Assembly: GCF_003918875.1 (NCBI RefSeq)
Contig: NW_025764959.1
Span: forward strand, 1-64,000
Direction of reading: 5' to 3'
DNA: 64,000 bases
Source of the DNA: Haliotis rubra
Taxonomy: Eukaryota
The stretch's first letter is position 1; each line of letters opens with the position of its first letter. Positions 8,139-64,000 of this stretch are shown here, piece after piece. The notes beneath the pieces are model-generated. The model made no database searches and had not been told where the DNA came from. It was given only the letters and a program-made list of their open reading frames with translations. The translations under genes were made by a program, and so were the position numbers.

Positions 8139-9653
8139 CACGCCTTTCGTCATTTTGCGCGGGCTTCTGACGGGTGTCATGCCCAATAATCTATTCTGTC
8201 CAATAAATGTGCTTAAAAAGCCATGGATAACCAACTAAAATGAAACACATTTAGATATTGACGATGGATTTTATCTTACACAACTCTCGGCTACGCCACA
8301 GCATAACATTTTTCAACCGTTGTCATTCCTTTGACCATATAAATGACCATGACATATCATAATGATTGAAGAAAACCACCCAAAATACTCTCTATCTCTC
8401 ATACCTAATGTTTCAGAATGTCATCCTTTCTCGAATTGTACTCTATCCTTTGAAATGAACATGCCCCAGTGCTTGGGCTGAACCTAGGAGGTTAAAACTG
8501 TTAATGCATACAGCATACAATGCAAAAGAAAACTGAATCTTTCAAATTGGCATCAGCACAAGTCAAAAGTATTTCAAGAAAAAGCACTCGGTGTACAACA
8601 TTCCCTGAAGAAACAGAACACGAAAGATCGGAACATCCTTACACAAGACAGTGGTCATCATTGAAATGGGCTCAGTTAGCAAGCTGGTCCCATCTGTACA
8701 ATGCCCTTTTACATTATTGTGTATTCAAAGCAACATTTACACATGATAGAGTTGTATTACGTTGTCCTGTGCAACTCTCCAACAGAATTGTCACATATGT
8801 ATTCAAGATGTACTTTCTACCCAATCTAACACACACATGAACTGTCTTCAAACTATATATACACATCTTTATATGGTAAGGTTTCAAACAATCTGACGTT
8901 CACCAAGTATTGTTTCAGATGGACAATATCCACATACAAAAGTCTCAGATCATTCGTGATATATATCTATGATGTAAGAAGAGGTAGAGAAATGGTGAGG
9001 TTAACAAATAAGGTGCTACGTCAAAGAAATGCAGACAATACAGTCCATACTTTGACTTTGCCTACTTTAAACAGGGATTTTCTGTTATTGTGCAAGTGGT
9101 TTTGTCGTTCTTATTTATTACAAATAGAGGTTTCGTGAAGCATAAGACGTTTTTCTGTTGCTATGTTTTTGTCAGCGGCCCTCTCCCTCTACCAACAAAG
9201 CCAATGCATTAGAAGTAAGACGACGAAGGGCACCGTTAGATTAATCCCGACTTTATCAAGAAACGCTGATTGATATTCCCCGAGATAACGAGATTGGATT
9301 GGTTGAACTTTCCTCAGACCTCCCTTTACTACAAATTAAGCTTGTTTTGACAAGCACATGATTGGTGCTTCAAAGTGGACAATGAGATCCCATTTCGATC
9401 AAAGCCCAATGAAGTTGCAGTATAGCTTTGATCTCGCCACTGGCTTCCAAAACGCTCTCTTTGATGTATAAATCCCCACTTGTTTGTACTGAGGGCAAGT
9501 ATAAAGGTTTCCCAGAGTCCGATGTACTTCACTCCATCTCAGCCTGCAGGACCGATCACACCCTCTTTCAATTATCAGAGCGTCACTGACTTCCTACAGT
9601 ATTAGCTATAGGCCCGATATCAGTCCAGAATTGTGTAGATAAGTCCCTAGAAA

Positions 9654-10271
9654 ATGGATCCAGTTCAAGTTGCCATCAAGCTGAGAGGTCTCCTTGTTGC
9701 CCATGACAATGCAGTGAAAGAGATCCTGACATTGGGGTAAATATCAACACTTCTTATCTGCCTGTAAAAATGCCAATATTTAGTACTCTGACCTTCAAAA
9801 ATTGAAAAACCTCATGACTTTATTTTGATCATCTCTGCATTAAGACTTCTAATTACCCCCGTTTTACTTTTTTTTCAGACATGCAGGTGTACAAGCTGAT
9901 GCAAAGATGACGGCCAACTCCTCCAACAACTGTATAATTCGAGGTGAACAGCTGATCCAGAGACGATGGGTACTGGAAGGTGTGAAGGGAGATGTTACCA
10001 TCTACAGACAAATCAAGTGGCAAGAGGTGCAGGCCTGTGTAAATGCCATCACCAAAGATGTTTCTGGAGAGGGATACAGGAGGCGGATTGGAATGCTGAA
10101 ACTTCCTTCAATGACGATGACGCTTCCTTCACCGAACCCGAGGTCGACAGCTCATACAGTGAGGACGACGAAGACCAGGAAGACCTCTACACCAACGACA
10201 GCAGCTACGATATGATGACTCTCAGTCGAGCTTTGTCTGTAGACGACTGTGCACTTCATAGACACGCTTAA
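9654..10271 (+). CDS. Array gene copy 1 (two exons; several indels, probably sequencing error)
   Basis: Same exon/intron structure as intact copies, with indels mostly in homopolymers; this is the copy nearest the fold-back point. Confidence 0.6.
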
Positions 10272-12049
10272 GGGAAATCACAAGTTCCTGGCCACATCAG
10301 CTAGTGCTACATTAACTTTGTTATTGTTCTTGTTCAGAAATGTTGTGCAAAGAGCATCCTGTTATATTGTAACCATAATTGCTTGTTGATGGTTATGTTG
10401 ATGAAATAAAATAATGAAGTCGATATTATAATCTTTGTCATTTGCTGACACGTTCACGACATCTTGAGGACAGACATTAGTATAGAAAGCTCTTTTGATA
10501 CTAGAGAAACGATTCATTCAAGATGGCATCTCACAGTTTCACGCCTTTCGTCATTTGCGCGGGTTCTGACGGTGTCATGCCCAATAATCTATTCTGTCCA
10601 ATAAAATGTAGCTAAAAGCCATGGATAATAACCAACTAAAATGAAACACATTTAGATATTGACGATGGGATTTCCATCTTACACAACTCCGGCTACGCCA
10701 CAGCATAACATTTTCAACCGTTGTCATTCCTTTGACCATATAAATGACCATGACATATCATAATGATTGAAGAAAACCACCCAAAATACTCTATCTCTCA
10801 TACCGAATGTTTCGTAATGTCATCCTTTCGACTGTACTCTATCCTTTTGAAATGAACATGCCCCAGTGCTTGGGCTGAACCTAGGAGGTTAAAACTGTTA
10901 ATGCATACAGCATACAATGCAAAAGAAAACTGAATTCTTTCAAATTGGCATCAGCACAAGTCAAAAGTATTTCAAGAAAAAGCACTCGGTGTACAACATT
11001 CCCCTGAAGAAACAGAACACGAAAGATCGGAACATCCTTACACAAGACAGTGGTCATCATTGAAATGGGCTCAGTTAGCAAAGCTGGTCCCATCTGTACA
11101 ATGCCCTTTTACATTATTGTGTATTCAAAGCAACATTTACACATGATAGAGTTGTATTACGTTGTCCTGTGCAACTCTCCAACAGAATTGTCACATATGT
11201 ATTCAAGATGTACTTTCTACCCAATCTAACACACATGAACTGTCTTCAAACTATATATACACATCTTTTATATGGTAAGGTTTCAAACAATCTGACGTTC
11301 ACCAAGAATTGTTTCAGATGGACAATATCCACATACAAAAGTCTCAGATCATTCGTGATATATATCTATGATGTAAGAAGAGGTAGAGAAATGGTGAGGT
11401 TAACAAATAAGGTGCTACGTCAAAGAAATGCAGACAATACAGTCCATACTTTGACTTTGCCTACTTTAACAGGGATTTTCTGTTATTGTGCAAGTGGTTT
11501 TGTCGTTCTTATTTATTACAAATAGAGGTTTCGTGAAGCATAAGACGTTTTCTGTTGCTATGTTTTTTGTCAGCGGCCTTCTCCCTACCAACAAAAGCCA
11601 ATGCATTAGAAGTAAGACGACGAAGGGCACCGTTAGATTAATCCCGACTTTATCAAGAAACGCTGATTGATATTCCCCGAGATAACGAGATTGGATTGGT
11701 TGAACTTTCCTCAGACCTCCCTTTACTACAAATTAAGCTTGTTTGACAAGCACATGATTGGTGCTTCAAAGTGGACAATGAGATCCCATTTCGATCAAAG
11801 CCCAATGAAGTTTGCAGTATAGCTTTGATCTCGCCACTGGCTTCCAAAACGCTCTCTTTGATGTATAAATCCCCACTTGTTTGTACTGAGGGCAAGTATA
11901 AAGGTTTCCCAGAGTCCGATGTACTTCACTCCATCTCAGCCTGCAGGACCGATCACACCCTCTTTCAATTATCAGAGCGTCACTGACTTCCTGCAGTATT
12001 AGCTATAGGCCCGATATCAGTCCAGAATTGTGTAGATAAGCCCTAGAAA

Positions 12050-12662
12050 ATGGATCCAGTTCAAGTTGCCATCAAGCTGAGAGGTCTCCTTGTTGCCCAT
12101 GACAATGCAGTGAAAGAGATCCTGACATTAGGTAAATATCAACACTTCTTATCTGCCTGTAAAAATGCCAATATTTAGTACTCTGACCTTCAAAATTGAA
12201 AACCTCATGACTTTATTTTGATCATCTCTACCAAGACTTCTAATTACCCCGTTTTACTTTTTTTCAGACATGCAGGTGTACAAGCTGATGCAAAAGATGA
12301 CGGCCAACTCCTCCAACAACTGTATAATTCGAGGTGAACAGCTGATCCAGAGACGATGGGTACTGGAAGGTGTGAAGGAGATGTTTACCATCTACAGACA
12401 AATCAAGTGGCAAGAGGTGCAGGCCTGTGTAAATGCCATCACCAAAGATGTTTCTGGAGAAAGGGATACAGAGGCGGATTGGAATGCTGAAACTTCCTTC
12501 AATGACGATGACGCTTCCTTCACCGAACCCGAGGTCGACAGCTCATACAGTGAGGACGACGAAGACCAGGAAGACCTCTACACCAACGACAGCAGCTACG
12601 ATATGATGACTCTCAGTCGAGCTTTGTCTGTAGACGACTGTGCACTTCATAGACACGCTTAA
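12050..12662 (+). CDS. Array gene copy 2, intact 158-aa unknown protein (exons 12050-12131, 12268-12662)
   Basis: aaaATGG start; MDPVQVAIKLRGLLVAHDNAVKEILTL; phase-1 intron G|GTAAAT...CTAAT...TTTTCAG|AC; then DMQVYKLMQK...HRHA-stop in frame. Confidence 0.85.
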
Positions 12663-14438
12663 GGGAAATCACAAGTTCCTGGCCACATCAGCTAGTGCTA
12701 CATTAACTTTGTTATTGTTCTTGTTCAGAAATGTTGTGCAAAGAGCATCCTGTTATATTGTAACCATAATTGCTTGTTGATGGTTATGTTGATGAAATAA
12801 AATAATGAAGTCGATATTATAATCTTTGTCATTTGCTGACACGTTCACGACATCTTGAGGACAGACATTAGTATAGAAAGCTCTTTTGATACTAAGAGAG
12901 AAACGATTCATTCAAGATGGCATCTCACAGTTTCACGCCTTTCGTCATTTTGCGCGGGTTCTGACGGTGTCATGCCCAATAATCTATTCTGTCCAATAAA
13001 TGTAGCTAAAAGCCATGGATAATAACCAACTAAAATGAAACACATTTAGATATTGACGATGGGATTTCCATCTTACACAACTCCGGCTACGCCACAGCAT
13101 AACATTTTCAACCGTTGTCATTCCTTTGACCATATAAATGACCATGACATATCATAATGATTGAAGAAAACCACCCAAAATACTCTATCTCTCATACCGA
13201 ATGTTTCGTAATGTCATCCTTTCGACTGTACTCTATCCTTTTGAAATGAACATGCCCCAGTGCTTGGGCTGAACCTAGGAGGTTAAAAACTGTTAATGCA
13301 TACAGCATACAATGCAAAAGAAAACTGAATCTTTCAAATTGGCATCAGCACAAGTCAAAAGTATTTCAAGAAAAAGCACTCGGTGTACAACATTCCCCTG
13401 AAGAAACAGAACACGAAAGATCGGAACATCCTTACACAAGACAGTGGTCATCATTGAAATGGGCTCAGTTAGCAAGCTGGTCCCATCTGTACAATGCCCT
13501 TTTACATTATTGTGTATTCAAAGCAACATTTACACATGATAGAGTTGTATTACGTTGTCCTGTGCAACTCTCCAACAGAATTGTCACATATGTATTCAAG
13601 ATGTACTTTCTACCCAATCTAACACACATGAACTGTCTTCAAACTATATATACACATCTTTATATGGTAAGGTTTCAAACAATCTGACGTTCACCAAGAA
13701 TTGTTTCAGATGGACAATATCCACATACAAAAGTCTCAGATCATTCGTGATATATATCTATGATGTAAGAAGAGGTAGAGAAATGGTGAGGTTAACAAAT
13801 AAGGTGCTACGTCAAAGAAATGCAGACAATACAGTCCATACTTTGACTTTGCCTACTTTAACAGGGATTTTCTGTTATTGTGCAAGTGGTTTTGTCGTTC
13901 TTATTTATTACAAATAGAGGTTTCGTGAAGCATAAGACGTTTTCTGTTGCTATGTTTTGTCAGCGGCCTTCTCCTCTACCAACAAAGCCAATGCATTAGA
14001 AGTAAGACGACGAAGGGCACCGTTAGATTAATCCCGACTTTATCAAGAAACGCTGATTGATATTCCCGAGATAACGAGATTGGATTGGTTGAACTTTCCT
14101 CAGACCTCCTTTACTACAAATTAAGCTTGTTTCGACAAGCACATGATTGGTGCTTCAAAGTGGACAATGAGATCCCATTTCGATCAAAGCCCAATGAAGT
14201 TGCAGTATAGCTTTGATCTCGCCACTGGCTTCCAAAACGCTCTCTTTGATGTATAAATCCCCACTTGTTTGTACTGAGGGGCAAGTATAAAGGTTTCCCA
14301 GAGTCCGATGTACTTCACTCCATCTCAGCCTGCAGGACCGATCACACCCTCTTTCAATTATCAGAGCGTCACTGACTTCCTACAGTATTAGCTATAGGCC
14401 CGATATCAGTCCAGAATTGTGTAGATAAGCCCTAGAAA

Positions 14439-15051
14439 ATGGATCCAGTTCAAGTTGCCATCAAGCTGAGAGGTCTCCTTGTTGCCCCATGACAATGCAG
14501 TGAAAGAGATCCTGACATTAGGTAAATATCAACACTTCTTATCTGCCTGTAAAATGCCAATATTTAGTACTCTGACCTTCAAAATTGAAAACCCTCATGA
14601 CTTTATTTTGATCATCTCTACCAAGACTTCTAATTACCCCGTTTTACTTTTTCAGACATGCAGGTGGTACAAGCTGATGCAAAAGATGACGGCCAACTCC
14701 TCCAACAACTGTATAATTCGAGGTGAACAGCTGATCCAGAGACGATGGGTACTGGAAGGTGTGAAGGAGATGTTTACCATCTACAGACAAATCAAGTGGC
14801 AAGAGGTGCAGGCCTGTGTAAATGCCATCACCAAAGATGTTTCTGGAGAAAGGGATACAGAGGCGGATTGGAATGCTGAAACTTCCTTCAATGACGATGA
14901 CGCTTCCTTCACCGAACCCGAGGTCGACAGCTCATACAGTGAGGACGACGAAGACCAGGAAGACCTCTACACCAACGACAGCAGCTACGATATGATGACT
15001 CTCAGTCGAGCTTTGTCTGTAGACGACTGTGCACTTCATAGACACGCTTAA
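14439..15051 (+). CDS. Array gene copy 3 (two single-base insertions, probably sequencing error)
   Basis: GCCCCAT versus GCCCAT and GTGGTAC versus GTGTAC; otherwise the same as copy 2. Confidence 0.65.
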
Positions 15052-17122
15052 GGGAAATCACAAGTTCCTGGCCACATCAGCTAGTGCTACATTAACTTTG
15101 TTATTGTTCTTGTTCAGAAATGTTGTGCAAAGAGCATCCTGTTATATTGTAACCATAATTGCTTGTTGATGGTTATGTTGATGAAATAAAATAATGAAGT
15201 CGATATTATAATCTTTGTCATTTGCTGACACGTTCACGACATCTTGAGGACAGACATTAGTATAGAAAGCTCTTTTGATACTAAGAGAGAAACGATTCAT
15301 TCAAGATGGCATCTCACAGTTTCACGCCTTTCGTCATTTTGCGCGGGTTCTGACGGTGTCATGCCCAATAATCTATTCTGTCCAATAAATGTAGCTAAAA
15401 GCCATGGATAATAACCAACTAAAATGAAACACATTTAGATATTGACGATGGGATTTCCATCTTACACAACTCCGGCTACGCCACAGCATAACATTTTCAA
15501 CCGTTGTCATTCCTTTGACCATATAAATGACCATGACATATCATAATGATTGAAGAAAACCACCCAAAATACTCTATCTCTCATACCGAATGTTTCGTAA
15601 TGTCATCCTTTCGACTGTACTCTATCCTTTTGAAATGAACATGCCCCAGTGCTTGGGCTGAACCTAGGAGGTTAAAAACTGTTAATGCATACAGCATACA
15701 ATGCAAAAGAAAACTGAATCTTTCAAATTGGCATCAGCACAAGTCAAAAGTATTTCAAGAAAAAGCACTCGGTGTACAACATTCCCCTGAAGAAACAGAA
15801 CACGAAAGATCGGAACATCCTTACACAAGACAGTGGTCATCATTGAAATGGGCTCAGTTAGCAAGCTGGTCCCATCTGTACAATGCCCTTTTTACATTAT
15901 TGTGTATTCAAAGCAACATTTACACATGATAGAGTTGTATTACGTTGTCCTGTGCAACTCTCCAACAGAATTGTCACATATGTATTCAAGATGTACTTTC
16001 TACCCAATCTAACACACATGAACTGTCTTCAAACTATATATACACATCTTTATATGGTAAGATTTCAAACAATCTGACGTTCACCAAGTATTGTTTCAGA
16101 TGGACAATATCCACATACAAAAGTCTCAGATCATTCGTGATATATATTTATGATGTAAGAAGAGGTAGAGAAATGGTGAGGTTAACAAATAAGGTGCTAC
16201 GTCAAAGAAATGCAGACAATACAGTCCATACTTTGACTTTGCCTACTTTAACAGGGATTTTCTGTTATTGTGCAAGTGGTTTTGTCGTTCTTATTTATTA
16301 CAAATAGAGGTTTCGTGAAGCATAAGACGTTTTCTGTTGCTATGTTTTTGTCAGCGGCCTTCTCCCTCTACCAACAAAAGCCAATGCATTAGAAGTAAGA
16401 CGACGAAGGGCACCATTAGATTAATCCCGACTTTATCAAGAAACGCTGATTGATATTCCCCGAGATAACGAGATTGGATTGGTTGAACTTTCCTCAGACC
16501 TCCCTTTACTACAAATTAAGCTGGTTTTGACAAGCACATGATTGGTGCTTCAAAGTGGACAATGAGATCCCATTTCGATCAAAGCCCAATGAAGTTGCAG
16601 TATAGCTTTGATCTCGCCACTGGCTTCCAAAACGCTCTCTTTGATGTATAAATCCCCACTTGTTTGTACTGAGGGCAAGTATAAAGGTTTCCCAGAGTCC
16701 GATGTACTTCACTGACATTCATTCATTCACACATTCATTCATTCATTGATCAGCGTCCTTGGAGCCGGAAAAGCGTAACAAGCCGCAGCATCAAATTCGA
16801 AATCGCACACTCACTCGACCCTGGCGTCGCCATTTCTACCCACACTGTTCACTGACTTTCTCAACCAATAGCACCGGCAAGGGCGCCTAGCCACTGGCTC
16901 TTCGGGCTCCGGCCCCCCTCAAACAGCAAGTATAACTTGCCTACTATTTATTTCATAAACTGTAAATACTTAATCTCATCAATCATTTTGTAAATACTTT
17001 ATCTTTGTCTTTCACCTTATATGTTTATTTTGTGCATTCTGTATATAGTACATGTAACACTCTACCCACACCCACTGCCCCCTCCCCAACTTTCAAACCC
17101 CTCCCCCCACCCCACCCCCAAC

Positions 17123-18788
17123 ATGTCCTCCCCACTACCTTCCACATCACTCTTCTCCACGCCAATTAAAGACTTCCCACAACTCACCTCTCCAAACAAC
17201 ATCAACCCCATACCCATAGACTTCGGCATAAATCTAGACCACCTACTCCCACCCCAACCCATGGAAACTGCCAAACCCCTACCAACACCACCACCACCCA
17301 TAAAACCCAACACCCAACCAAACAAAAAACGCCCTCACATTTCTCCCGAAGCAACCCAACAATCCAACAAAAAAACATGTGACCAAGACACCCCACCGCA
17401 GCCACAACCAACCAAATACCTACTCCTAGCATTCGCCACCAACACCAATACACCCCTAAATCACACATACTCTACAAACAAATTTGCCCTCTGCCTCAAG
17501 AAACAACACATCACTTACAAATACATAAACTTCTGTGGCAGAGGTTTCAAAGTAACATTTCCAGATGAACATTCACTCAACAACACACTCAAACACACTT
17601 TAATAGACGGAAACACAATAAAATGGGAGAAACCGAGGTGGCAGACACAAACACAGGGGGTCATTCACATCGACAACAGGGAAACACCAACAGACATTCA
17701 AGAATACATACACATTGCAAATACCATCACAAACCAACCCAAAATCACAGACTACAAAACAATAAACACAAAACAACCATCCGCAAACAACCCCAATACC
17801 CAGATAACCTTCCTCACATTTCAATCAACCACCCTACCAACCTACATCACATTTGGCGCATTAAACTACAAAGTACACCCCATCCGTAAAAAACCCAACA
17901 CAATGTAAAAACTGCTTTCAATTCAATCACACAACAGACAACTGTAAAAACTATTCACTATGCCCAAAATGCGGGTCAGACATGCATGACATCACAGAAT
18001 GCACCCACACTACATATTGCATACACTGCCAAATACAAGGACACTCTGCAAATCAAAACACCTGCCCCATAAAACAGACACAAATATTAAAAATCAACAA
18101 GCACCTCAAACAAACTGACCTGCCCAAACCTGCAACTTACACCCACAAAACAATTACTCCCTACTATCACTATCGTCCTCCTCTCCCTCAAACATCTCCT
18201 CTTCCACAAACACCTCCGCCCCTTCCTACCACGCCCCCACCCGCCCTACCAAATCCCACAAACCCCGCCAACCTCCATCCCTACCTCCCTCCCAACCACC
18301 ATCCCCTCCCCCAACATCCAAACCTCCCCAAACGCCTTAACCCACCCCGCCCCAACCCAATAAACCCAAACCCCAACCCACCACCAAGTACCCACCTCCA
18401 AATCCCCAACCCATCAAAACCACTACTCCCTCCTCCCAACCCCACCCCATCAAACCCACCCAAACAACCCCGTTCCAAAACTGCCCCCCACCCACTAAAC
18501 CCCCATCCAACCACTCCCCCACATCTTCCATCCCCCAACCCTCCTTCACCGCTTCACCAAAAACCCGGTCACTCCACCCAAAAAATCCACTACATCTGCC
18601 CCACAAACAAATCTCACACTCACTTACAAAAAATAACCCACAATTTAAACCTCATTATTGAATTCATCACTGCAGCAATACTCATGAACAACCCCACAGC
18701 CAAAAAATTACACAACATTGCACGCAGAAACAAAATATATCACAAGAGTCTAGCTAGTCTCATCATAGCAGTTAAATCCCTCTCATAA
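17123..18788 (+). CDS. LINE ORF1, gag-like nucleic-acid-binding protein (one frameshift near 17895)
   Basis: Joining frames gives CKNCFQFNHTTDNC, CPKCGSDMHDITEC and CIHCQIQGHSANQNTC (CX2CX4HX4-6C three times), with Pro-rich flanks. Start chosen at MSSPLP (alternative 17021). Confidence 0.85.
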
Positions 18789-18889
18789 AACAACCCACCA
18801 CTAAGCTACCCTAGCACTTCAACCCTCTCTTCAAAATTTCTGCCCCATCCATGGCTTATTATAATATCATATTCCAAATTACCGCAGTC

Positions 18890-21800
18890 ATGGCTCTGAT
18901 ACAATGGAATTGTAACGGCCTCCGAGCAAACGGGCATGAGCTTAAGGCACTCATCGCCCAAAACAAAATTTCGCCCCAAATAATATTCTTACAAGAAACA
19001 AAACTTTCACCAAAATTCGCCTTCAAAATCCCAGGCTACAATTATATCAGGAAGGATAGACCCCGGCCAATAAATCTCCCAGGTCCCCCAGCAGGGGGAC
19101 TGGGAATATTCATCTCAAATAAACTCAATTATTCAGAAATTGACATTCAAACTACTAACTTAGAAGTCCTGGCAATAAAAACTACAATAAATAATAAACT
19201 ATTAACTTTCATAAATACCTACAGAAGACCCTCTATCAAACTTATACCCCAAGATTTAGACAATATCGCAAAATTCTTAACGCCCAACACCTTTATCCTC
19301 GGGGACCTAAACTCTCACCACCCATTATGGGGCACAAAACCCTATACTGATAATAACGGTTTTCTCCTAACTAACTGGCTAGACGACCACAACCTCATCA
19401 CACTAAACGACAATCAACCCACCAGATACCCTCTCTCCCACACCCAATCTCCAACTGCAATAGATCTTACAATCACCACCCCCACATACTCAAAAGCTTG
19501 CCTATGGAGGTACATGCAGACACATGGGGCAGTGACCACTGCCCCATAAAATCACCATATCTTCACTTCTTACACCAGAGATCACATACAAACCCCCAAA
19601 CTACCCCCACTTCTAGCGCCGAAATCAAATACAATATACACAAAGCAGACTGGAACAAATTCACCAAACTCTGCAATCAAATCGACCCATCAAACATTAT
19701 AAACACTGACATAGAAACTTTTAATTCACAACTCACAAACACCATCATCAATATAACAAATACATGCATACCCACATTTCCGGACCACTCAAGCACAAAA
19801 ACAGTCCCATGGTGGAGCCAAGACATAATTAACGCCAGAAGGCAAGAAAAAGGCCCTTAATAAATCAAAGAGGGACCGTTCCAAATTACATTTAGCTAAA
19901 AACTCAGAAATAATACAAAACAATTAATCAAGGCAGCAAAAGGAACATTGGAGAAAATTTTGCTCAACCCTCAGGCTAAATCAACATAACTCTAGAAAAA
20001 TGTGGAAAAATTTAAAGCCATACAGGGGAAATTCCAAATCCATTATTCAACCTAACCTTCCGAACCTCCCCACAAACAAAGATAAAGCTAATGCTGTTGC
20101 TGCCCATTTCTCGGACACTAGCAGCTCCACCAATTACACAGCTAACTTCCAAAACACCATTAAAAACACCCACCCTACTCACCTGAACCACCCCACTCAC
20201 ATCTACCTATAAACAAAAACATAAACATACACGAACTTAAGGCAGCCTTAAAACATAAAAACAGCCTCAGCCCTGGTCCAGATAACATTACATACACCAT
20301 ACTAAACAAACTTCCACCAAACATCCTAAACTTAACACTCACCCTATTCAACCATATCTGGACCACAGGAAACATACCATCTTCATGGAAAACAGCCAAG
20401 GTGGTACCAATCCTAAAGCCAGGGAAACCCATAAACTCCCCAGATTCATTTCGACCCATCTCCCTTACCTCACACCTATGTAAAACTTTAGAGTCTATAG
20501 TAAACAATAGACTAAAACACCAAATTCAAACCCATAACCTAATTAAGCAGGACCAGAGTGGCTTCACTCCTAATAGGCAAACTTTGGATCACATTTTACA
20601 TTTGGAACATGATATAAAGGTAGCCCAAGCACAAAAACAATACACGCTGGCCATTTTATAGATTTCAGCAAAGCTTTCGACATGATCTGGCACAACGGCC
20701 TAATACAAAACTACAAGAAAATGCCATACACGGGCGGATTCTAAATTTCATTCAAGCATTTCTTAATAACAGACAAATAATAGTCAAATCACACAACACT
20801 GTCTCGGACCCTTTCCCACTAGAAAATGGAACCCCAGGGGGCATAATTTCCCCAACACTATTCAATTTTATGATAAATGACATTTTTCCGGACAAGTGGC
20901 CAGAAATTTCTACTGCTAAATTTGCTGATGACATTTCATTTTGGACATCATCCACCTCAGGAAAACAAGCCACAATCAAATCTCAAAGAATGCTAAACCA
21001 CATCCAAAACTGGGCCCAGAAATGGGGGGTTCCACATTAACGTTAAAAAAACCGTGGGCATCATATTCAAAAAACAAAGAATGCAAAATTATACACCCAA
21101 ACTTCATCTCAATAACCAAGAAATCAAGTTCGAAAAAGAGGCAAAATTCTTAGGTGTAACTTTCGACCAACACATGACATGGACACCCCATATTAATAAC
21201 TTGGTCAACTCATGTCAAAAAGATCTAAATCTCATGCGAGCCATCAGCGGCACAAACTGGGGAGCCGACAAACAAACACTTATTAGTATATACAAAACTC
21301 TGATACAGTCTAGACTGGACTATGCTGCTCCGGTCCTCCACTCTATCTCCCCAACCAACCTTCAAAAATTAAACTCAATTCAGTATAAAGCCCTTAAACA
21401 AGCCCTAGGCACTAGGACTGGTACCTCCCACAACACTCTTCTCTTACTCACAGGCATCCCTTCAATCAAAACACGAATAAATCAAACCGCACTCAATTAC
21501 TGGGCTGGGGCCCAACACAACCCAATCTACAAACTTATCACAACTAAATACACAAACATTAAAAAAATCTACTATCAAAAAATTTAAAAACAACCCAAAC
21601 AAAGCCCCCCTACTCACTCACCTCAACAGTCTGCTTCACTCACACCATCTAAACACCATCCAACACACACCTCCCATAACAAGCTACATTCATGACAAAC
21701 CCCCACCCCCTACAGATATCACCCTAGTAGAAACACTCCAAAATCTCCCTAAACCCACAGACACTCAAACCAAAACAAACCTCATCCAAACCCACATCAA

Positions 21801-22680
21801 CCTAAATTATCCCAACCATACCCAGATTTATACAGACGCCTCAATCGGCACAAACAAACGCATAGGCATAGGCATCCATGTAAACCAAACACCCCCCCTA
21901 ACAACAAACCTCCATTATACAAACCACACAAACATTAACACAGCAGAACTCACAGCAATCCTATCAGCACTTCACCTCATCCCCACTATGCCCCACACCA
22001 ACATCCTATTACTTACAGACTCTCTCAGCGCCATCAAACAACTTCAACACAAGCACTCAAAAGCACGAAACGACTTAATACACAACATAATTATACAAAC
22101 CAACTCACTCCAACAACTAAATAAAAACATAACACTAATGTGGATTCCAGCTCACACACACAACAAAGGAAATAACACAGCAGACATAGCAGCCAAACTA
22201 GCCACCACACAAAACTCTCCACCCATTAAATTTCATACATCCAAAACCGAAATAAAACAACTCATCAAACACCACATAATCAACCAAAACTACCAACACA
22301 ACCTTAACACAAACAAATCCACCTGGGTCAAAGCAATCATAACTAAACCTATCACCAAAACACTCACCTACTCAAGCAACAAACACATGGACACACTCAT
22401 CACAAGATTAATCACTGGCATTACAAACTTAAATCATCCATTATACAAACAAAACAGACACCCAGATGGATTATGCACACATTGCAATCAACCTGAAACC
22501 ATTGAACACATATTCACAAACTGCCACCTCCAACAAACAAACATCACACAACTACACACCAGCATTCCAACTAAATATCACAACAACATACAGCTACTTT
22601 TAAATCCTTTTAACCCGCCAAATGTACTCCATGCCATAGCCACCTTTATCCAAAACTCAAATATAATAAATAAAATTTAG
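18890..22680 (+). CDS. LINE ORF2: AP endonuclease, reverse transcriptase, RNase H, zinc finger (several frameshifts)
   Basis: APE motifs IQWNCNG, LQET, GDLNSHHPLWG, IDL, GSDH. RT motifs FRPISLTS, QSGF, DFSKAFD, FADD (20921), KFLGV. RNase H motifs IYTDAS, AEL, TDSLSA, WIPAH, GNNTAD. Zinc finger CTHCNQPETIEHIFTNC. Confidence 0.93.
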
Positions 22681-23575
22681 ATCCTCCCAAACAATCCTCA
22701 ACATACTACCTTTCAATAGCCTATATATTTAGACCAGGCACCCAAAATCTCACTTCTCTATACTCATACCCTACCACCAACATAAGCCTGCTCATTTAGA
22801 CCTGGGAAACAAATTCATTTATTTATAGTTGTCCTATTTCCGCTAAAAGGTCCGCGCCTCTCCCAGCCAATCAGCAACCACTAAAGCATAAACAAACCTA
22901 GCTCCAGCCCTCATGTACAAAGGTCACGACCTCAGCCCCAAGCCAGTTCACAACAGTTTTTACCACAGACACGGCCTTTGCCTTACCGTCCCCTCACCCC
23001 CACCCCCACCCCCGTTTCAACTCATTTTTTCTTTCTTTATTAGGCCCCTATATTAAATAACTACAGCATAACTGTATCACCACATCATATCCCCAATATG
23101 CTATACACTCATTCTACACTCACTCCCACCCCACCCCCACCCCCGTCACCCCCTCACCCAACTTTTACTACCCCGTATTTATTCCAACTCCTCTTATTAA
23201 TAACAACTGCTTTATTTTTCTGTCTCTCTTTATAATTTCGGCTTTTATTTATTTATATCATATTTTAACTACTTTTATTCTAAAACTACCTAAGTTTAAT
23301 CCCCCATAATTTACATTTTTTTGGGTATGGTGGTTTATCCCTATTACTACATCATTAATTAATTTATATATCAACCCCACCTACCCCGTCGGCGATATTG
23401 GCCACGCTAAAAGCCGACGTAAAACTTCAAATTTCGTTCGTTCGATGTACTTCACTCCATCTCAGCCTGCAGGACCGATCACACCCTCCTTCAATTATCA
23501 GAGCGTCACTGACTTCCTACAGTATTAGCTATAGGCCCGATATCAGTCCAGAATTGTGTAGATAAGCCCTAGAAA

Positions 23576-33944: not shown

Positions 33945-34557
33945 ATGGATCCAGTTCAAGTTGCCATCAAGCTGAGAGGTCTCCTTGTTGCCCATGACAA
34001 TGCAGTGAAAGAGATCCTGACATTAGGTAAATATCAACAGTTCTTATCTGCCTGTAAAATGCCAATATTTAGTACTCTGACCTTCAAAATTGAAAACCTC
34101 ATGACTTTATTTTGATCATCTCTACCAAGACTTCTAATTACCCCGTTTTACTTTTTTTCAGACATGCAGGTGTACAAGCTGATGCAAAAAGATGACGGCC
34201 AACTCCTCCAACAACTGTATAATTCGAGGTGAACAGCTGATCCAGAGACGATGGGTACTGGAAGGTGTGAAGGAGATGTTTACCATCTACAGACAAATCA
34301 AGTGGCAAGAGGTGCAGGCCTGTGTAAATGCCATCACCAAAGATGTTTCTGGAGAAAGTGATACAGAGGCGGATTGGAATGCTGAAACTTCCTTCAATGA
34401 CGATGACGCTTCCTTCACCGAACCCGAGGTCGACAGCTCATACAGTGAGGACGACGAAGACGAGGAAGACCTCTACACCAACGACAGCAGCTACGATATG
34501 ACGACTCTCAGTCGAGCTTTGTCTGTAGACGACTGTGCACTTCATAGACACGCTTAA
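33945..34557 (+). CDS. Array gene copy 10 (1-bp insertion in the same A-run)
   Basis: GCAAAAAGATG. Confidence 0.65.
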
Positions 34558-35883
34558 GGGAAATCACAAGTTCCTGGCCACATCAGCTAGTGCTACAGTA
34601 ACTTTGTTATTGTTCTTGTTCAGAAATGTTGTGCAAAGAACATCCTGTTATATTGTAACCATAATTGCTTGTTGATGGTTATGTTGATGAAATAAAATAA
34701 TGAAGTCGATATTATAATCTTTGTCATTTGCTGACACGTTCACGACATCTTGAGGACAGACATTAGTATAGAAAGCTCTTTTGATACTAAGAGAAACGAT
34801 TCATTCAAGATGGCATCTCACAGTTTCACGCCTTTCGTCATTTTGCGCGGGTTCTGACGGTGTCATGCCCAATAATCTATTCTGTCCAATAAATGTAGCT
34901 AAAAGCCATGGATAATAACCAACTAAAATGAAACACATTTAGATATTGACGATGGGATTTCCATCTTACACAACTCCGGCTACGCCACAGCATAACATTT
35001 TCAACCGTTGTCATTCCTTTGACCATATAAATGACCATGACATATCATAATGATTGAAGAAAACCACCCAAAATACTCTATCTCTCATACCGAATGTTTC
35101 GTAATGTCATCCTTTCGACTGTACTCTATCCTTTTGAAATGAACATGCCCCAGTGCTTGGGCTGAACCTAGGAGGTTAAAAACTGTTAATGCATACAGCA
35201 TACAATGCAAAAGAAAACTGAATCTTTCAAATTGGCATCAGCACAAGTCAAAAGTATTTCAAGAAAAAGCACTCGGTGTACAACATTCCCCTGAAGAAAC
35301 AGAACACGAAAGATCGGAACATCCTTACACAAGACAGTGGTCATCATTGAAATGGGCTCAGTTAGCAAGCTGGTCCCATCTGTACAATGCCCTTTTACAT
35401 TATTGTGTATTCAAAGCAACATTTACACATGATAGAGTTGTATTACGTTGTCCTGTGCAACTCTCCAACAGAATTGCCACATATGTATTCAAGATGTACT
35501 TTCTACCCAATCTAACACACATGAACTGTCTTCAAACTATATATACACATCTTTATATGGTAAGGTTTCAAACAATCTGACGTTCACCAAGTATTGTTTC
35601 AGATGGACAATATCCACATACAAAAGTCTCAGATCATTCGTGATATATATCTATGATGTAAGAAGAGGTAGAGAAATGGTGAGGTTAACAAATAAGGTGC
35701 TACGTCAAAGAAATGCAGACAATACAGTCCATACTTTGACTTTGCCTACTTTAACAGGGATTTTCTGTTATTGTGCAAGTGGTTTTGTCGTTCTTATTTA
35801 TTACAAATAGAGGTTTCGTGAAGCATAAGACGTTTTCTGTTGCTATGTTTTTGTCAGCGGCCTTCTCCCTCTACCAACAAAAG

Positions 35884-36220
35884 CCAATGCATTAGAAGTA
35901 AGACGACGAAGGGCACCGTTAGATTAATCCCGACTTTATCAAGAAACGCTGATTGATATTCCCCGAGATAACGAGATTGGATTGGTTGAACTTTCCTCAG
36001 ACCTCCCTTTACTACAAATTAAGCTTGTTTTGACAAGCACATGATTGGTGCTTCAAAGTGGACAATGAGATCCCATTTCGATCAAAGCCCAATGAAGTTG
36101 CAGTATAGCTTTGATCTCGCCACTGGCTTCCAAAACGCTCTCTTTGATGTATAAATCCCCACTTGTTTGTACTGAGGGCAAGTATAAAGGTTTCCCAGAG
36201 TCCGATGTACTTCACTCCAT
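35884..36220 (+). promoter_or_regulatory. Pol II promoter of the array gene (representative unit 11; present in every full unit)
   Basis: CCAAT/ATTGG at 35884, 35976, 35981, 36044, 36089. TATAAAT at 36150. TATAAAG at 36183 lies 31 nt before the A (36214) of Inr TCACTCC (YYANWYY). The 122-nt leader has no ATG. Confidence 0.75.
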
Positions 36221-36335
36221 CTCAGCCTGCAGGACCGATCACACCCTCTTTCAATTATCAGAGCGTCACTGACTTCCTACAGTATTAGCTACAGGCCCGA
36301 TATCAGTCCAGAATTGTGTAGATAAGCCCTAGAAA

Positions 36336-36948
36336 ATGGATCCAGTTCAAGTTGCCATCAAGCTGAGAGGTCTCCTTGTTGCCCATGACAATGCAGTGAA
36401 AGAGATCCTGACATTAGGTAAATATCAACAGTTCTTATCTGCCTGTAAAATGCCAATATTTAGTACTCTGACCTTCAAAATTGAAAACCTCATGACTTTA
36501 TTTTGATCATCTCTACCAAGACTTCTAATTACCCCGTTTTACTTTTTTTTCAGACATGCAGGTGTACAAGCTGATGCAAAAGATGACGGCCAACTCCTCC
36601 AACAACTGTATAATTCGAGGTGAACAGCTGATCCAGAGACGATGGGTACTGGAAGGTGTGAAGGAGATGTTTACCATCTACAGACAAATCAAGTGGCAAG
36701 AGGTGCAGGCCTGTGTAAATGCCATCACCAAAGATGTTTCTGGAGAAAGTGATACAGAGGCGGATTGGAATGCTGAAACTTCCTTCAATGACGATGACGC
36801 TTCCTTCACCGAACCCGAGGTCGACAGCTCATACAGTGAGGACGACGAAGACGAGGAAGACCTCTACACCAACGACAGCAGCTACGATATGACGACTCTC
36901 AGTCGAGCTTTGTCTGTAGACGACTGTGCACTTCATAGACACGCTTAA
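36336..36948 (+). CDS. Array gene copy 11, intact (exons 36336-36417, 36554-36948)
   Basis: Same spliced frame. Confidence 0.85.
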
Positions 36949-37081
36949 GGGAAATCACAAGTTCCTGGCCACATCAGCTAGTGCTACAGTAACTTTGTTA
37001 TTGTTCTTGTTCAGAAATGTTGTGCAAAGAACATCCTGTTATATTGTAACCATAATTGCTTGTTGATGGTTATGTTGATGA

Positions 37082-37087
37082 AATAAA
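37082..37087 (+). terminator. Polyadenylation signal of the array gene (representative; present in all complete units)
   Basis: AATAAA ~135 nt after the stop, followed by T-rich TCTTTGTCATTT. Confidence 0.7.
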
Positions 37088-38727
37088 ATAATGAAGTCGA
37101 TATTATAATCTTTGTCATTTGCTGACACGTTCACGACATCTTGAGGACAGACATTAGTATAGAAAGCTCTTTTGATACTAAGAGAGAAACGATTCATTCA
37201 AGATGGCATCTCACAGTTTCACGCCTTTCGTCATTTTGCGCGGGTTCTGACGGTGTCATGCCCAATAATCTATTCTGTCCAATAAATGTAGCTAAAAGCC
37301 ATGGATAATAACCAACTAAAATGAAACACATTTAGATATTGACGATGGGATTTCCATCTTACACAACTCCGGCTACGCCACAGCATAACATTTTCAACCG
37401 TTGTCATTCCTTTGACCATATAAATGACCATGACATATCATAATGATTGAAGAAAACCACCCAAAATACTCTATCTCTCATACCGAATGTTTCGTAATGT
37501 CATCCTTTCGACTGTACTCTATCCTTTTGAAATGAACATGCCCCAGTGCTTGGGCTGAACCTAGGAGGTTAAAACTGTTAATGCATACAGCATACAATGC
37601 AAAAGAAAACTGAATCTTTCAAATTGGCATCAGCACAAGTCAAAAGTATTTCAAGAAAAAGCACTCGGTGTACAACATTCCCCTGAAGAAACAGAACACG
37701 AAAGATCGGAACATCCTTACACAAGACAGTGGTCATCATTGAAATGGGCTCAGTTAGCAAGCTGGTCCCATCTGTACAATGCCCTTTTACATTATTGTGT
37801 ATTCAAAGCAACATTTACACATGATAGAGTTGTATTACGTTGTCCTGTGCAACTCTCCAACAGAATTGCCACATATGTATTCAAGATGTACTTTCTACCC
37901 AATCTAACACACATGAACTGTCTTCAAACTATATATACACATCTTTATATGGTAAGGTTTCAAACAATCTGACGTTCACCAAGTATTGTTTCAGATGGAC
38001 AATATCCACATACAAAAGTCTCAGATCATTCGTGATATATATCTATGATGTAAGAAGAGGTAGAGAAATGGTGAGGTTAACAAATAAGGTGCTACGTCAA
38101 AGAAATGCAGACAATACAGTCCATACTTTGACTTTGCCTACTTTAACAGGGATTTTCTGTTATTGTGCAAGTGGTTTTGTCGTTCTTATTTATTACAAAT
38201 AGAGGTTTCGTGAAGCATAAGACGTTTTCTGTTGCTATGTTTTTGTCAGCGGCCTTCTCCCTCTACCAACAAAAGCCAATGCATTAGAAGTAAGACGACG
38301 AAGGGCACCGTTAGATTAATCCCGACTTTATCAAGAAACGCTGATTGATATTCCCCGAGATAACGAGATTGGATTGGTTGAACTTTCCTCAGACCTCCCT
38401 TTACTACAAATTAAGCTTGTTTTGACAAGCACATGATTGGTGCTTCAAAGTGGACAATGAGATCCCATTTCGATCAAAGCCCAATGAAGTTGCAGTATAG
38501 CTTTGATCTCGCCACTGGCTTCCAAAACGCTCTCTTTGATGTATAAATCCCCACTTGTTTGTACTGAGGGCAAGTATAAAGGTTTCCCAGAGTCCGATGT
38601 ACTTCACTCCATCTCAGCCTGCAGGACCGATCACACCCTCTTTCAATTATCAGAGCGTCACTGACTTCCTACAGTATTAGCTATAGGCCCGATATCAGTC
38701 CAGAATTGTGTAGATAAGCCCTAGAAA

Positions 38728-39339
38728 ATGGATCCAGTTCAAGTTGCCATCAAGCTGAGAGGTCTCCTTGTTGCCCATGACAATGCAGTGAAAGAGATCC
38801 TGACATTAGGTAAATATCAACAGTTCTTATCTGCCTGTAAAATGCCAATATTTAGTACTCTGACCTTCAAAATTGAAAACCTCATGACTTTATTTTGATC
38901 ATCTCTACCAAGACTTCTAATTACCCCGTTTTACTTTTTTTCAGACATGCAGGTGTACAAGCTGATGCAAAAGATGACGGCCAACTCCTCCAACAACTGT
39001 ATAATTCGAGGTGAACAGCTGATCCAGAGACGATGGGTACTGGAAGGTGTGAAGGAGATGTTTACCATCTACAGACAAATCAAGTGGCAAGAGGTGCAGG
39101 CCTGTGTAAATGCCATCACCAAAGATGTTTCTGGAGAAAGTGATACAGAGGCGGATTGGAATGCTGAAACTTCCTTCAATGACGATGACGCTTCCTTCAC
39201 CGAACCCGAGGTCGACAGCTCATACAGTGAGGACGACGAAGACGAGGAAGACCTCTACACCAACGACAGCAGCTACGATATGACGACTCTCAGTCGAGCT
39301 TTGTCTGTAGACGACTGTGCACTTCATAGACACGCTTAA
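38728..39339 (+). CDS. Array gene copy 12, intact
   Basis: Same spliced frame. Confidence 0.85.
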
Positions 39340-49869: not shown

Positions 49870-50834
49870 GGTCCCATCTGTACAATGCCCTTTTACATTA
49901 TTGTGTATTCAAAGCAACATTTACACATGATAGAGTTGTATTACGTTGTCCTGTGCAACTCTCCAACAGAATTGCCACATATGTATTCAAGATGTACTTT
50001 CTACCCAATCTAACACACATGAACTGTCTTCAAACTATATATACACATCTTTATATGGTAAGGTTTCAAACAATCTGACGTTCACCAAGTATTGTTTCAG
50101 ATGGACAATATCCACATACAAAAGTCTCAGATCATTCGTGATATATATCTATGATGTAAGAAGAGGTAGAGAAATGGTGAGGTTAACAAATAAGGTGCTA
50201 CGTCAAAGAAATGCAGACAATACAGTCCATACTTTGACTTTGCCTACTTTAACAGGGATTTTCTGTTATTGTGCAAGTGGTTTTGTCGTTCTTATTTATT
50301 ACAAATAGAGGTTTCGTGAAGCATAAGACGTTTTCTGTTGCTATGGTTTTGTCAGCGGCCTTCTCCCTCTACCAACAAAAGCCAATGCATTAGAAGTAAG
50401 ACGACGAAGGGCACCGTTAGATTAATCCCGACTTTATCAAGAAACGCTGATTGATATTCCCCGAGATAACGAGATTGGATTGGTTGAACTTTCCTCAGAC
50501 CTCCCTTTACTACAAATTAAGCTTGTTTTGACAAGCACATGATTGGTGCTTCAAAGTGGACAATGAGATCCCATTTCGATCAAAGCCCAATGAAGTTGCA
50601 GTATAGCTTTGATCTCGCCACTGGCTTCCAAAACGCTCTCTTTGATGTATAAATCCCCCACTTGTTTGTACTGAGGGCAAGTATAAAGGTTTCCCAGAGT
50701 CCGATGTACTTCACTCCATCTCAGCCTGCAGGACCGATCACACCCTCTTTCAATTATCAGAGCGTCACTGACTTCCTACAGTATTAGCTATAGGCCCGAT
50801 ATCAGTCCAGAATTGTGTAGATAAGCCCTAGAAA

Positions 50835-51446
50835 ATGGATCCAGTTCAAGTTGCCATCAAGCTGAGAGGTCTCCTTGTTGCCCATGACAATGCAGTGAAA
50901 GAGATCCTGACATTAGGTAAATATCAACAGTTCTTATCTGCCTGTAAAATGCCAATATTTAGTACTCTGACCTTCAAAATTGAAAACCTCATGACTTTAT
51001 TTTGATCATCTCTACCAAGACTTCTAATTACCCCGTTTTACTTTTTTTCAGACATGCAGGTGTACAAGCTGATGCAAAAGATGACGGCCAACTCCTCCAA
51101 CAACTGTATAATTCGAGGTGAACAGCTGATCCAGAGACGATGGGTACTGGAAGGTGTGAAGGAGATGTTTACCATCTACAGACAAATCAAGTGGCAAGAG
51201 GTGCAGGCCTGTGTAAATGCCATCACCAAAGATGTTTCTGGAGAAAGTGATACAGAGGCGGATTGGAATGCTGAAACTTCCTTCAATGACGATGACGCTT
51301 CCTTCACCGAACCCGAGGTCGACAGCTCATACAGTGAGGACGACGAAGACGAGGAAGACCTCTACACCAACGACAGCAGCTACGATATGACGACTCTCAG
51401 TCGAGCTTTGTCTGTAGACGACTGTGCACTTCATAGACACGCTTAA
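50835..51446 (+). CDS. Array gene copy 17, intact
   Basis: Same spliced frame. Confidence 0.85.
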
Positions 51447-53226
51447 GGGAAATCACAAGTTCCTGGCCACATCAGCTAGTGCTACAGTAACTTTGTTATT
51501 GTTCTTGTTCAGAAATGTTGTGCAAAGAACATCCTGTTATATTGTAACCATAATTGCTTGTTGATGGTTATGTTGATGAAATAAAATAATGAAGTCGATA
51601 TTATAATCTTTGTCATTTGCTGACACGTTCACGACATCTTGAGGACAGACATTAGTATAGAAAGCTCTTTTGATACTAAGAGAGAAACGATTCATTCAAG
51701 ATGGCATCTCACAGTTTCACGCCTTTCGTCATTTTGCGCGGGTTCTGACGGTGTCATGCCCAATAATCTATTCTGTCCAATAAATGTAGCTAAAAGCCAT
51801 GGATAATAACCAACTAAAATGAAACACATTTAGATATTGACGATGGGATTTCCATCTTACACAACTCCGGCTACGCCACAGCATAACATTTTCAACCGTT
51901 GTCATTCCTTTGACCATATAAATGACGATGACATATCATAATGATTGAAGAAAAACACCCAAAACACTCTATCTCTCATACCGTATGTTTCGTAATGTCA
52001 TACTTTCAACTGTACTCTATCCTTTGGAAATGAACATGCCCCCCAGTGCTTGGGCTGAACCCAGGAGGTTAATAACTGTTAATGCATACAGCATGCAATG
52101 CAAAAGAAAACTGAATCTTTCAAATTGGCATCAGCACAAGTCAAAAGTATTTCAAGAAAAAGCACTCGGTGTACAACATTCCCCTGAAGAAACAGAACAC
52201 GAAAGATCGGAACATCCTTACACAAGACAGTGGTCATCATTGAAATGGGCTCAGTTAGCAAGCTGGTCCCATCTGTACAATGCCCTTTTACATTATTGTG
52301 TATTCAAAGTAACATTTACACATGATAGAGTTGTATTACGTTGTCCTGTGCAACTCTCCAACAGAATTGCCACATATGTATTCAAGATGTATTTTCTACC
52401 CAATCTAACACACATGAACTGTCTTCAAACTATATATACACATCTTTATATGGTAAGGTTTCAAACAATCTGACGTTCACCAAGTATTGTTTCAGATGGA
52501 CAATATCCACATACAAAAGTCTCAGATCATTCGTGCAATATTTCTATGATGTAAGAAGAGATAGAGAAATGGTGAGGTTAACAAATAAGGTGCTACGTCA
52601 AAGAAATGCAGACAATACAGTCCATACTTTGACTTGGCCTACTTTAACGGGGATTTTCTGTTATTGTGCAACTGGTTTTGTCGTTCCTATTTATTACAAA
52701 TAGAGATTACGTCAAGCATAAGACGTTTTCTGTTGCTATGGTTTTCAGCGGCCTTCTCCCTCTACCAACAAAAGCCAATGCATTAGAAGTAAGACGACGA
52801 AGGGCACCGTTAGATTAATCCCGACTTTATCAAGAAACGCTGATTGATATTCCCCGAGATAACGAGATTGGATTGGTTGAACTTTCCTCAGACCTCCCTT
52901 TACTACAAATTAAGCTTGTTTTGACAAGCACATGATTGGTGCTTCAAAGTGGACAATGAGATCCCATTTCGATCAAAGCCCAATGAAGTTGCAGTATAGC
53001 TTTGATCTCGCCACTGGCTTCCAAAACGCTCTCTTTGATGTATAAATCCCCACTTGTTTGTACTGAGGGCCAGTATAAAGGTTTCCCAGAGACCGATGTA
53101 CTTCACTCCATCTCAGCCTGCAGGACCGATCACACCCTCTTTCAATTATCAGAGCGTCACTGACTTCCTACAGTATTAGCTATAGGCCCGATATCAGTCC
53201 AGAATTGTGTAGATAAGCCCTAGAAA

Positions 53227-53569
53227 ATGGATCCAGTTCAAGTTGCCATCAAGCTGAGAGGTCTCCTTGTTGCCCATGACAATGCAGTGAAAGAGATCCT
53301 GACATTAGGTAAATATCAACAGTTCTTATCTGCCTGTAAAATGCCAATATTTAGTACTCTGACCTTCAAAATTGAAAACCTCATGACTTTATTTTGATCA
53401 TCTCTACCAAGACTTCTAATTACCCCGTTTTACTTTTTCAGACATGCAGGTGTACAAGCTGATGCAAAAGATGACGGCCAACTCCTCCAACAACTGTATA
53501 ATTCGAGGTGAACAGCTGATCCAGAGACCATTTATATTTAATTTATGTGTGGTTCCGTTTTGTGGATAG
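53227..53569 (+). pseudogene. Array gene copy 18, truncated in exon 2
   Basis: Homology stops after LIQR (53528); the frame runs into flanking DNA (PFIFNLCVVPFCG) and stops at 53569. Confidence 0.85.
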
Positions 53570-63995: not shown

Positions 63996-64000
63996 CTGCA

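Follow-up and report, generated by a model that had tools for sequence, protein, structure and literature searches.

The whole stretch of DNA that was analysed, hereafter the window, is the initial 64 kb of contig QXJH01000106.1 of Haliotis rubra (GCA_003918875.1), with identical window and contig coordinates. It carries a head-to-tail tandem array with a unit of ~2390 bp (8136-53528, self-BLAST). An earlier note, made from the sequence alone, had proposed that this region is a macrosatellite whose unit holds a complete two-exon gene for a 158-aa protein. Our analysis recovers the tandem array with its two-exon gene, of which 18 exon-1 copies are found in the window, and bears out most of this proposal. 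The interpretation that we hold with moderate confidence is that of a genuine and expressed two-exon gene arranged in tandem and evolving in concert, to which a benefit of dosage, a burst of expression driven by TCF and a binding function of the product may be added. The array is laid out as follows.

8136 to 16713, forward strand: left array block, ~3.6 units of ~2.39 kb, with ATGs at 9654, 12050 and 14439 (self-BLAST, gene copies).
23441 to 53528, forward strand: right array block, 14 further gene copies with ATGs from 23576 to 53227 (self-BLAST).
34827 to 37219, forward strand: reference unit of 2393 bp, composed of a fast-evolving spacer (unit positions 1 to ~1070) followed by the conserved promoter, the gene and the 3' region (cross-species BLAST, alignment).

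The units abut directly and share 96-98% identity, a single partial match being found at 93.6% (self-BLAST). Their absence from the output of Tandem Repeats Finder (TRF) results solely from the longest period of this program, which is 500. The array is nevertheless less regular than first described since, besides its head-to-tail units, it is interrupted by a long interspersed nuclear element (LINE) and contains three short units of 1.07 kb. The left block stops within the leader of its fourth unit, at the LINE insertion (junction sequence), while the array end, at 53528, cuts off the last gene copy (ATG 53227) within exon 2. The three short units are located in the right block (junctions at ~24452, ~27903 and ~28972) and were produced by a single deletion between ...GGCATCTC and TTTGATGTATAAAT, with a CTC microhomology; they lost two of three TCF motifs and retain the TATA-proximal one only. 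A second H. rubra array (locus L015, QXJH01000922.1, from ~377.3 kb toward the contig end) is 99.5-99.7% identical to the reference unit of the window, and NCBI annotates one gene only in it. Since this array still continues at the end of the fetched locus, ~3 kb before the contig end, the true copy number in H. rubra must exceed the assembled copies. The dosage amplification claimed initially stands at the DNA level only.

The gene was delineated on the reference unit by combining sequence features with contigs from sequencing runs X1, X2 and X4, which are labelled 'RNA?' (probable RNA, the kind being guessed), and from X15, a DNA-like run.

36336 to 36417, forward strand: coding part of exon 1, 82 nt (27 codons plus 1 nt), from the RNA junction and the NCBI gene at 36336-36948.
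36418 to 36553, forward strand: phase-1 intron, GT..AG, 136 nt; the equivalent intron at 38810-38944 is skipped in the X4 contig.
36554 to 36948, forward strand: coding part of exon 2, including the TAA stop codon at 36946-36948 (sequence).
37082 to 37087, forward strand: polyadenylation signal AATAAA; the end of the X1 contig is at 37089.

The gene copies share a TTAG/GTAAAT donor, a phase-1 intron of 133-142 nt with a pyrimidine tract and a TTTCAG/ACATGCAG acceptor, which opens an in-frame second exon with a coding length of 395 nt. The search for spliced transcripts that the earlier note had suggested found this junction in all three probable RNA runs. The X4 contig joins 38807 to 38943, which corresponds exactly to 38809/38945 once the cut is shifted by 2 to the GT..AG borders, and it differs from the bulk array copies by 0-1 mismatch. 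The X1 and X2 contigs show the same exon junction, aligned over neighbouring copies. In X1, X2 and X4, depth is zero over the intron and over the distal 1.3 kb of the unit. Conversely, X15 covers most of the unit including its distal part with a word depth of several thousand (~4300-4800 on the unit, without a single-copy baseline for copy number) and without the exon joint. The splice and the two-exon gene model are therefore real. Among the other signals announced for the unit, four CCAAT boxes, a leader whose final 125 nt are devoid of ATG, the gaaaATGG start context and an AATAAA signal ~135 nt beyond the stop codon are present in full units. The R/S, E/Q and T/M protein variants are likewise found in the window copies, and four copy-specific variants are identical to H. 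rubra RefSeq proteins P0005, P0007, P0008 and P0010. RefSeq lists the array protein as "uncharacterized protein LOC..." in four Haliotis species. The gene is hence annotated in RefSeq yet uncharacterised, which qualifies its presentation as undescribed: no characterised member or paper was found, but protein models already existed. Our literature search returned no paper on the array gene, on abalone macrosatellites or on gastropod tandem zygotic genes, and the array genes are not listed in the main text or appendix of a paper on abalone copy number (PMC9936805).

Although the gene is spliced, the idea that each unit contains it in complete form holds in part only, an intact 158-aa product being encoded by 10 of the 18 copies as assembled. 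NCBI gene models sit on exactly these 10 copies. In four others (ATGs 27035, 31559, 41120 and 48317), the run GCAAAAGATG contains three A instead of four, leading to a stop at codon 38. The copy with its ATG at 33945 has five A in the same run, and those starting at 9654 and 14439 display other one-base frameshifts. In the three-A copies, a T-run is shortened as well, and this state marks no substitution haplotype. In H. rufescens, the A-run is absent at this place and yet the frame is unchanged. Since the three-A state tracks another shortened homopolymer, since the A-run of the RNA contigs is free of indels and since all examined copies are intact in H. asinina (9/9) and H. rufescens (7/7), the one-base A-run breaks of H. 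rubra are likely homopolymer errors of the long-read assembly. An alternative acceptor 8 nt downstream, which would give the three-A copies a 155-aa frame, was rejected: it has no RNA support, and H. rufescens keeps the original frame without the A-run.

The array is not a peculiarity of H. rubra. The 158-aa gene is found in tandem on chromosome CM074529.1 of H. asinina (spacing of 2.36-2.41 kb), in H. rufescens (2.49-2.55 kb) and in H. cracherodii, and its sharing by these four species is new, as are the estimates of selection, the arrayed homolog of Patella, the clustered TCF cores and the recurrent LINE insertions described below. Good conservation between Haliotis species is limited to the segment from ~440 nt upstream of the ATG to the unit end. 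The distal spacer is 71% identical between H. rubra and H. asinina and almost unalignable with that of H. rufescens; the intron displays 67-80% identity between species, and the promoter block from ~-370 to -150 is better conserved. The dN/dS calculation initially proposed gave interspecies values of 0.13-0.28, decreasing to 0.10-0.17 for residues 1-90 (NG86, species consensus sequences), with a dS of 0.14-0.47, and homologs with a conserved frame do exist. Within one array, the coding sequences of the copies differ by 0.2-0.5%. As judged from these comparisons, the gene is under purifying selection plus concerted evolution.

Outside the genus, relatives are scarce. An exhaustive phmmer search against 1.84 billion representatives returned 15 proteins at E<=0.001, and a profile search added a full-length match of 129 aa from the limpet Patella caerulea (P0049, 'hypothetical protein SNE40_019294'). 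No search named an organism other than Haliotis species and P. caerulea. These results support a lineage-restricted gene family, as was anticipated, at least at the level of sequence searches. Distant relatives are 29-51% identical and have the core and the C-terminal motif in common. In Patella, the locus consists of at least 5 tandem units of ~2.38 kb that are 98.5-99% alike, with an 82-nt exon 1 and a phase-1 intron at the same position as in Haliotis; the array terminates next to an ankyrin/SOCS-box gene. The exon 1, donor and phase of Haliotis are also found in L007, a 2317-bp contig (GCA_006243085.1) whose overlapping ends imply a tandem unit of ~2.23 kb. Exon 1 is conserved in L007, in two further loci (L010 and L008) and in Patella. 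Both the gene structure and a tandem layout of ~2.2-2.5 kb hence recur in Haliotis, L007 and Patella.

At a smaller scale, the Patella locus contains partial units of ~675 bp (L012, 4746-5057 and 5421-5732) in which exon 2 is repeated and exon 1 is missing. Rearrangements inside the array therefore took place in Patella as well.

The LINE that interrupts the array of the window is accompanied by an older relic outside of it.

16714 to 23440, forward strand: non-LTR (long terminal repeat) retrotransposon (LINE), in sense orientation, with Pfam domains Exo_endo_phos, RVT_1, RNase_H and zf-RVT.
4 to 4018, reverse strand: older inverted relic, with the same LINE family at 4-3832 (83-85% identity).

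The array element (6.7 kb) codes for a reverse transcriptase, accompanied by an apurinic/apyrimidinic (AP) endonuclease and an RNase H, and a 14-bp target-site duplication, CGATGTACTTCACT, borders it on both sides. Its insertion point lies ~25-30 nt downstream of the conserved TATA box of one unit. At its 5' end, the relic adjoins an inverted and diverged fragment of the unit promoter (unit positions 1185-1390 at 4018-3835), with the same junction as in the array. Across the window and the fetched loci, three more insertions were found at this site. In H. rufescens (L006:12404-14525), a 5'-truncated LINE with an (AAGT)n tail lies at the aligned same nucleotide and is collinear with the H. rubra element (34-71% amino-acid identity over tblastx segments). 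Two insertions of the H. rufescens-type element are present in H. cracherodii (L019:8949-9868 and 12451-14425), one in sense and the other in antisense orientation with a 21-bp target duplication. In total, five LINE insertions occupy one leader site in three Haliotis species; they differ in truncation and orientation and align to one and the same 3' junction. This recurrence suggests a target-specific LINE lineage living on this array. The situation is reminiscent of R1/R2 elements in rDNA and of Tx1-type elements in snRNA, 5S and spliced-leader arrays, where related LINEs recur at one nucleotide of a tandem gene; in contrast to these systems, the target here is the leader or transcription start of a protein-coding array, and one of the H. 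cracherodii insertions is reversed. Besides, the position of the element is such that the host TATA promoter could transcribe a full-length sense copy.

The presence of a LINE inside and beside the array, together with the high copy number and the absence of a known domain, could lead one to propose that the repeat itself is derived from a transposable element or a satellite, with an open reading frame that is incidental or encoded by the element. We find this explanation scarcely credible. Indeed, the reading frame is spliced and under purifying selection, it recurs with the same exon structure and 29-51% identity in distant species, including at single-copy loci, and the protein carries no transposable-element domain. 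As for the LINE, it has its own target-site duplications, as expected for an insertion and not for a part of the unit.

At the protein level, family alignments (A1, A3 and A4) highlight an N-terminal helix motif (MD-x4-AIKLR-x-LL-x2-HD) and a core (G-x-QLI-x-RR-x-V-x-EG-x2-E-x-F-x2-YR-x2-KW-x-Q-V/I-Q-x-CVN-x-I), followed by a variable, acidic and Ser-rich linker and by a C-terminal motif (RAL-x-x-D-x-C-x-LHR) ending in C-E-L-H-R. AlphaFold2 (AF2) predicts, for Haliotis as for Patella (mean pLDDT, the predicted local distance difference test, of 64 and 71), an antiparallel hairpin made of helices 3-40 and 50-89/91 and then a disordered tail, to which the Haliotis model adds a C-terminal helix of low confidence. 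The hairpin (residues ~3-89) is mildly basic (pI 9.1), while the tail is Ser/Thr-rich with a net charge of about -21 and six aromatic residues. Nine S/T-x-x-D/E sites of the CK2 type are present in the protein, eight of them in the tail. The maximum of the Kyte-Doolittle profile (0.74 with a 19-residue window) indicates neither a signal peptide nor a membrane helix.

Similarity searches are in line with the initial statement that no histone, rRNA, snRNA or transposon protein was recognised in the product. There is no credible Pfam match for exon 2 nor for the 18 family members, which also lack a solved-structure match, and a Rfam scan of the window at gathering thresholds gave 0 hits. Sequence and profile searches of the PDB produced one chance-level match only, to a dUTPase (E 0.086). 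With the two AF2 models, Foldseek (PDB, AFDB clusters, Swiss-Prot and ESM Atlas) retrieved generic helical hairpins only, at TM <0.55 and with no E <0.02; the best AFDB match is K1R0G9, an uncharacterised protein of 133 aa. Because fold searches yield nothing but such generic hairpins, the array product is probably an intracellular and non-enzymatic protein, which would act as a binder or adaptor via its modelled hairpin and a phosphorylatable acidic tail.

Two more specific assignments were discarded. A GINS (Sld5/Psf) relationship, to which a language model gave scores of 0.50-0.58, finds no backing, since the 18 members gave no Sld5 match at E<=1 and the 50 best matches listed by Foldseek for the PDB include no GINS chain. 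Zinc binding by four conserved Cys/His positions is at odds with their replacement at two or three of these positions in Haliotis (W60, S148 and, in H. rufescens, C152S).

An acidic tail rich in CK2 sites in the product of an amplified, homogenised and lineage-restricted small gene, with an associated retrotransposon lineage, also brings to mind families amplified by genetic conflict or drive, either Stellate/Su(Ste)-like or ampliconic and sex-linked, that take part in a germline arms race. Drosophila Stellate and Suppressor of Stellate share with the present array a tandem organisation of small-protein units (~1-kb scale) that are amplified and homogenised. However, the array gene differs from Stellate by its purifying selection, its deep conservation, the absence of CK2 beta similarity and the lack of any visible antisense or suppressor partner. 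The conflict option, raised in the earlier note, fits poorly with the dN/dS of 0.13-0.28 and the strongly constrained N-terminal domain, and with the maintenance of the protein, intron position and array layout as far as Patella. Moreover, neither antagonist nor antisense partner was seen in the unit from open reading frames, Rfam or RNA depth, which is zero on the spacer. We therefore regard conflict as a very unlikely driver of the amplification.

Upstream of the gene, the reference unit contains the following elements.

35966 to 36216, forward strand: conserved promoter block (alignment, motif scan).
36081 (reverse strand), 36109 (forward strand) and 36142 (forward strand): TCF/LEF core heptamers (motif scan).
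35976, 35981, 36044 and 36089: CCAAT boxes (motif scan).
36150 and 36183: TATA boxes, 186 and 153 nt upstream of the ATG.

The TATA box reported initially is present, but there are two of them, and only the second (-153) is conserved in the three Haliotis species compared. CTTTGAT is the core recognised by HMG-box TCF/LEF factors, and beta-catenin/TCF acts in early spiralian cell-fate decisions. Three such cores (CTTTGAT or its complement) are found at -259 to -169 in H. rubra, H. asinina and H. rufescens, the last one abutting the first TATA box. The remainder of the Haliotis unit contains 0 heptamers, except for 1 in H. asinina. L007 also has three heptamers (-179 to -145) and 0 elsewhere, while the Patella total is five, three of which lie within -284 to -178. 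In any of the three lineages (Haliotis, L007 and Patella), 0 of 20000 shuffles reach 3 heptamers in the interval -330 to -100, the shuffle mean being 0.04-0.05, and the remaining ~2.1 kb of the unit hold 0-2. No significant BLAST alignment was obtained among the promoters of four lineages (Haliotis, L007, L010 and Patella). Their sole common 8-mer is ATCAAAGA, and one shared 8-mer was reached in 0.8% of Markov resamples. The same four promoters share the heptamer TGGCTTC, which is located between TCF sites 2 and 3. Finally, one CCAAT box of Haliotis lies between the two arms of a perfect inverted repeat of 9 bp (GATCAAAGC...GCTTTGATC).

From these motif clusters, we hypothesise that the array gene may be responsive to TCF/beta-catenin. 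A comparable arrangement is known from Xenopus siamois and Xnr3, where the ~150 nt preceding the TATA box hold at least 3 CTTTGAT/ATCAAAG cores; in contrast to these genes, the evidence here is of motifs only, and the abalone gene is in tandem and encodes no DNA-binding domain. In such a scheme, amplification would serve dosage, many identical short TATA-driven units being switched on together. The switch would most likely be TCF/beta-catenin and would give a burst of small protein, plausibly in embryos or in the germline.

Several observations weigh against an array of expressed and functional genes controlled in this way. The word depth of the RNA-like contigs is low (5-11) and the kind of their runs is guessed ('RNA?'). 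The X1 and X2 contigs extend upstream past both TATA boxes and cross a short-unit junction (37207 to 38527), which implies transcription of, or read-through across, short units or related copies. Past this junction, the contigs enter a diverged piece that resembles the region 3' of the poly(A) signal of the preceding gene (89% identity only) and then run into 291 nt that match nothing in the window or L015. Some transcripts therefore originate from read-through, from a variant or from an edge copy and not from the predicted TATA start. In addition, 8 of the 18 window copies are broken as assembled, the TCF link consists of motif counts only, with a single exact heptamer in L010, and the fold searches described above return generic hairpins. 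Finally, L008 and L009, which belong to one assembly, are two single-copy paralogs with longer introns; a tandem arrangement is hence frequent within the family, yet neither universal nor obligatory.

Part of these observations could be explained if the array were a by-product of unequal crossing-over, with one or a few functional copies, for instance at its edges or in solitary positions and driven by unique upstream DNA, a silent or decaying bulk and a neutral copy number. The joining of exon 1 to a diverged upstream segment (89-95% identity) and to the unplaced 291 nt in X1 and X2 goes in this direction, as do the low RNA depth, the broken copies, the three units deprived of two TCF motifs and the single-copy homologs of another species. 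On the other hand, all copies examined in H. asinina and H. rufescens are intact, and the H. rubra breaks are mostly one-base homopolymer differences. Arrays of ~2.2-2.5 kb with complete promoters are also found in Patella and L007, and the X4 contig fits bulk copies. All things considered, a by-product of this type appears rather unlikely, and we favour a homogenised array of genuine genes.

On the right side of the array, a flavin-containing monooxygenase (FMO)-like gene occupies ~59977-64000 of the window on the reverse strand (Pfam FMO-like on the NCBI product), and an open reading frame at 62365-62739 (reverse strand) resembles one of its exons. Two short tandem repeats in this flank, at 60470-60733 (period 144, built of CTCA-rich motifs) and 61756-61940 (period 80), are probably both within an intron of the FMO-like gene.

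Protein-coding macrosatellites, of which D4Z4/DUX4, RS447/USP17, TSPY and CT47 are examples, form a small group that is documented mainly in mammals and flies and whose members are usually of recent origin. The abalone array resembles them in its head-to-tail units at the kb scale, which carry one entire gene plus promoter apiece, and in the high identity that concerted evolution maintains between units. It differs by the absence of a homeobox, protease or other Pfam domain, by a 2.4-kb unit with one short intron and by a layout that extends from Haliotis to Patella. A second parallel is offered by the early histone repeats of marine invertebrates, a classic device for the supply of an embryonic burst, with which it has in common kb units and high-copy, homogenised, short and TATA-driven genes. 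In contrast to histone repeats, there is no histone fold, only one gene per unit, an intron, an AATAAA signal and no Rfam histone 3' element. Since abalones and limpets separated in the early Palaeozoic and the same layout is found in Patella, the array organisation has been either long retained or repeatedly reinvented.

If all these elements are taken together, one could imagine a gastropod macrosatellite gene, organised in ~2.2-2.5-kb units since before the abalone-limpet split, that would be a direct TCF/beta-catenin target expressed as a burst in the early embryo and that would have co-evolved with a target-specific LINE. Within this scenario, the protein would possibly feed back on beta-catenin/TCF or chromatin, and the LINE would land at the transcription start and be transcribed by the host promoter. 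As a whole, this scenario is doubtful, in contrast to the more modest array of genuine genes that we propose.

To conclude, this system is unusual for the evolutionary distance over which its array layout recurs, for its conserved cluster of TCF motifs and for its resident LINE. For genome annotation, the copies should be considered as real genes, and the H. rubra frameshifts are probably homopolymer errors. The LINE may exemplify a seldom seen situation, in which a retrotransposon lineage has specialised on an array of protein-coding units. Besides, developmental studies of spiralians gain a tangible candidate, namely a gene with many copies and TCF motifs, which could be traced with a single probe or morpholino because its copies are all alike.

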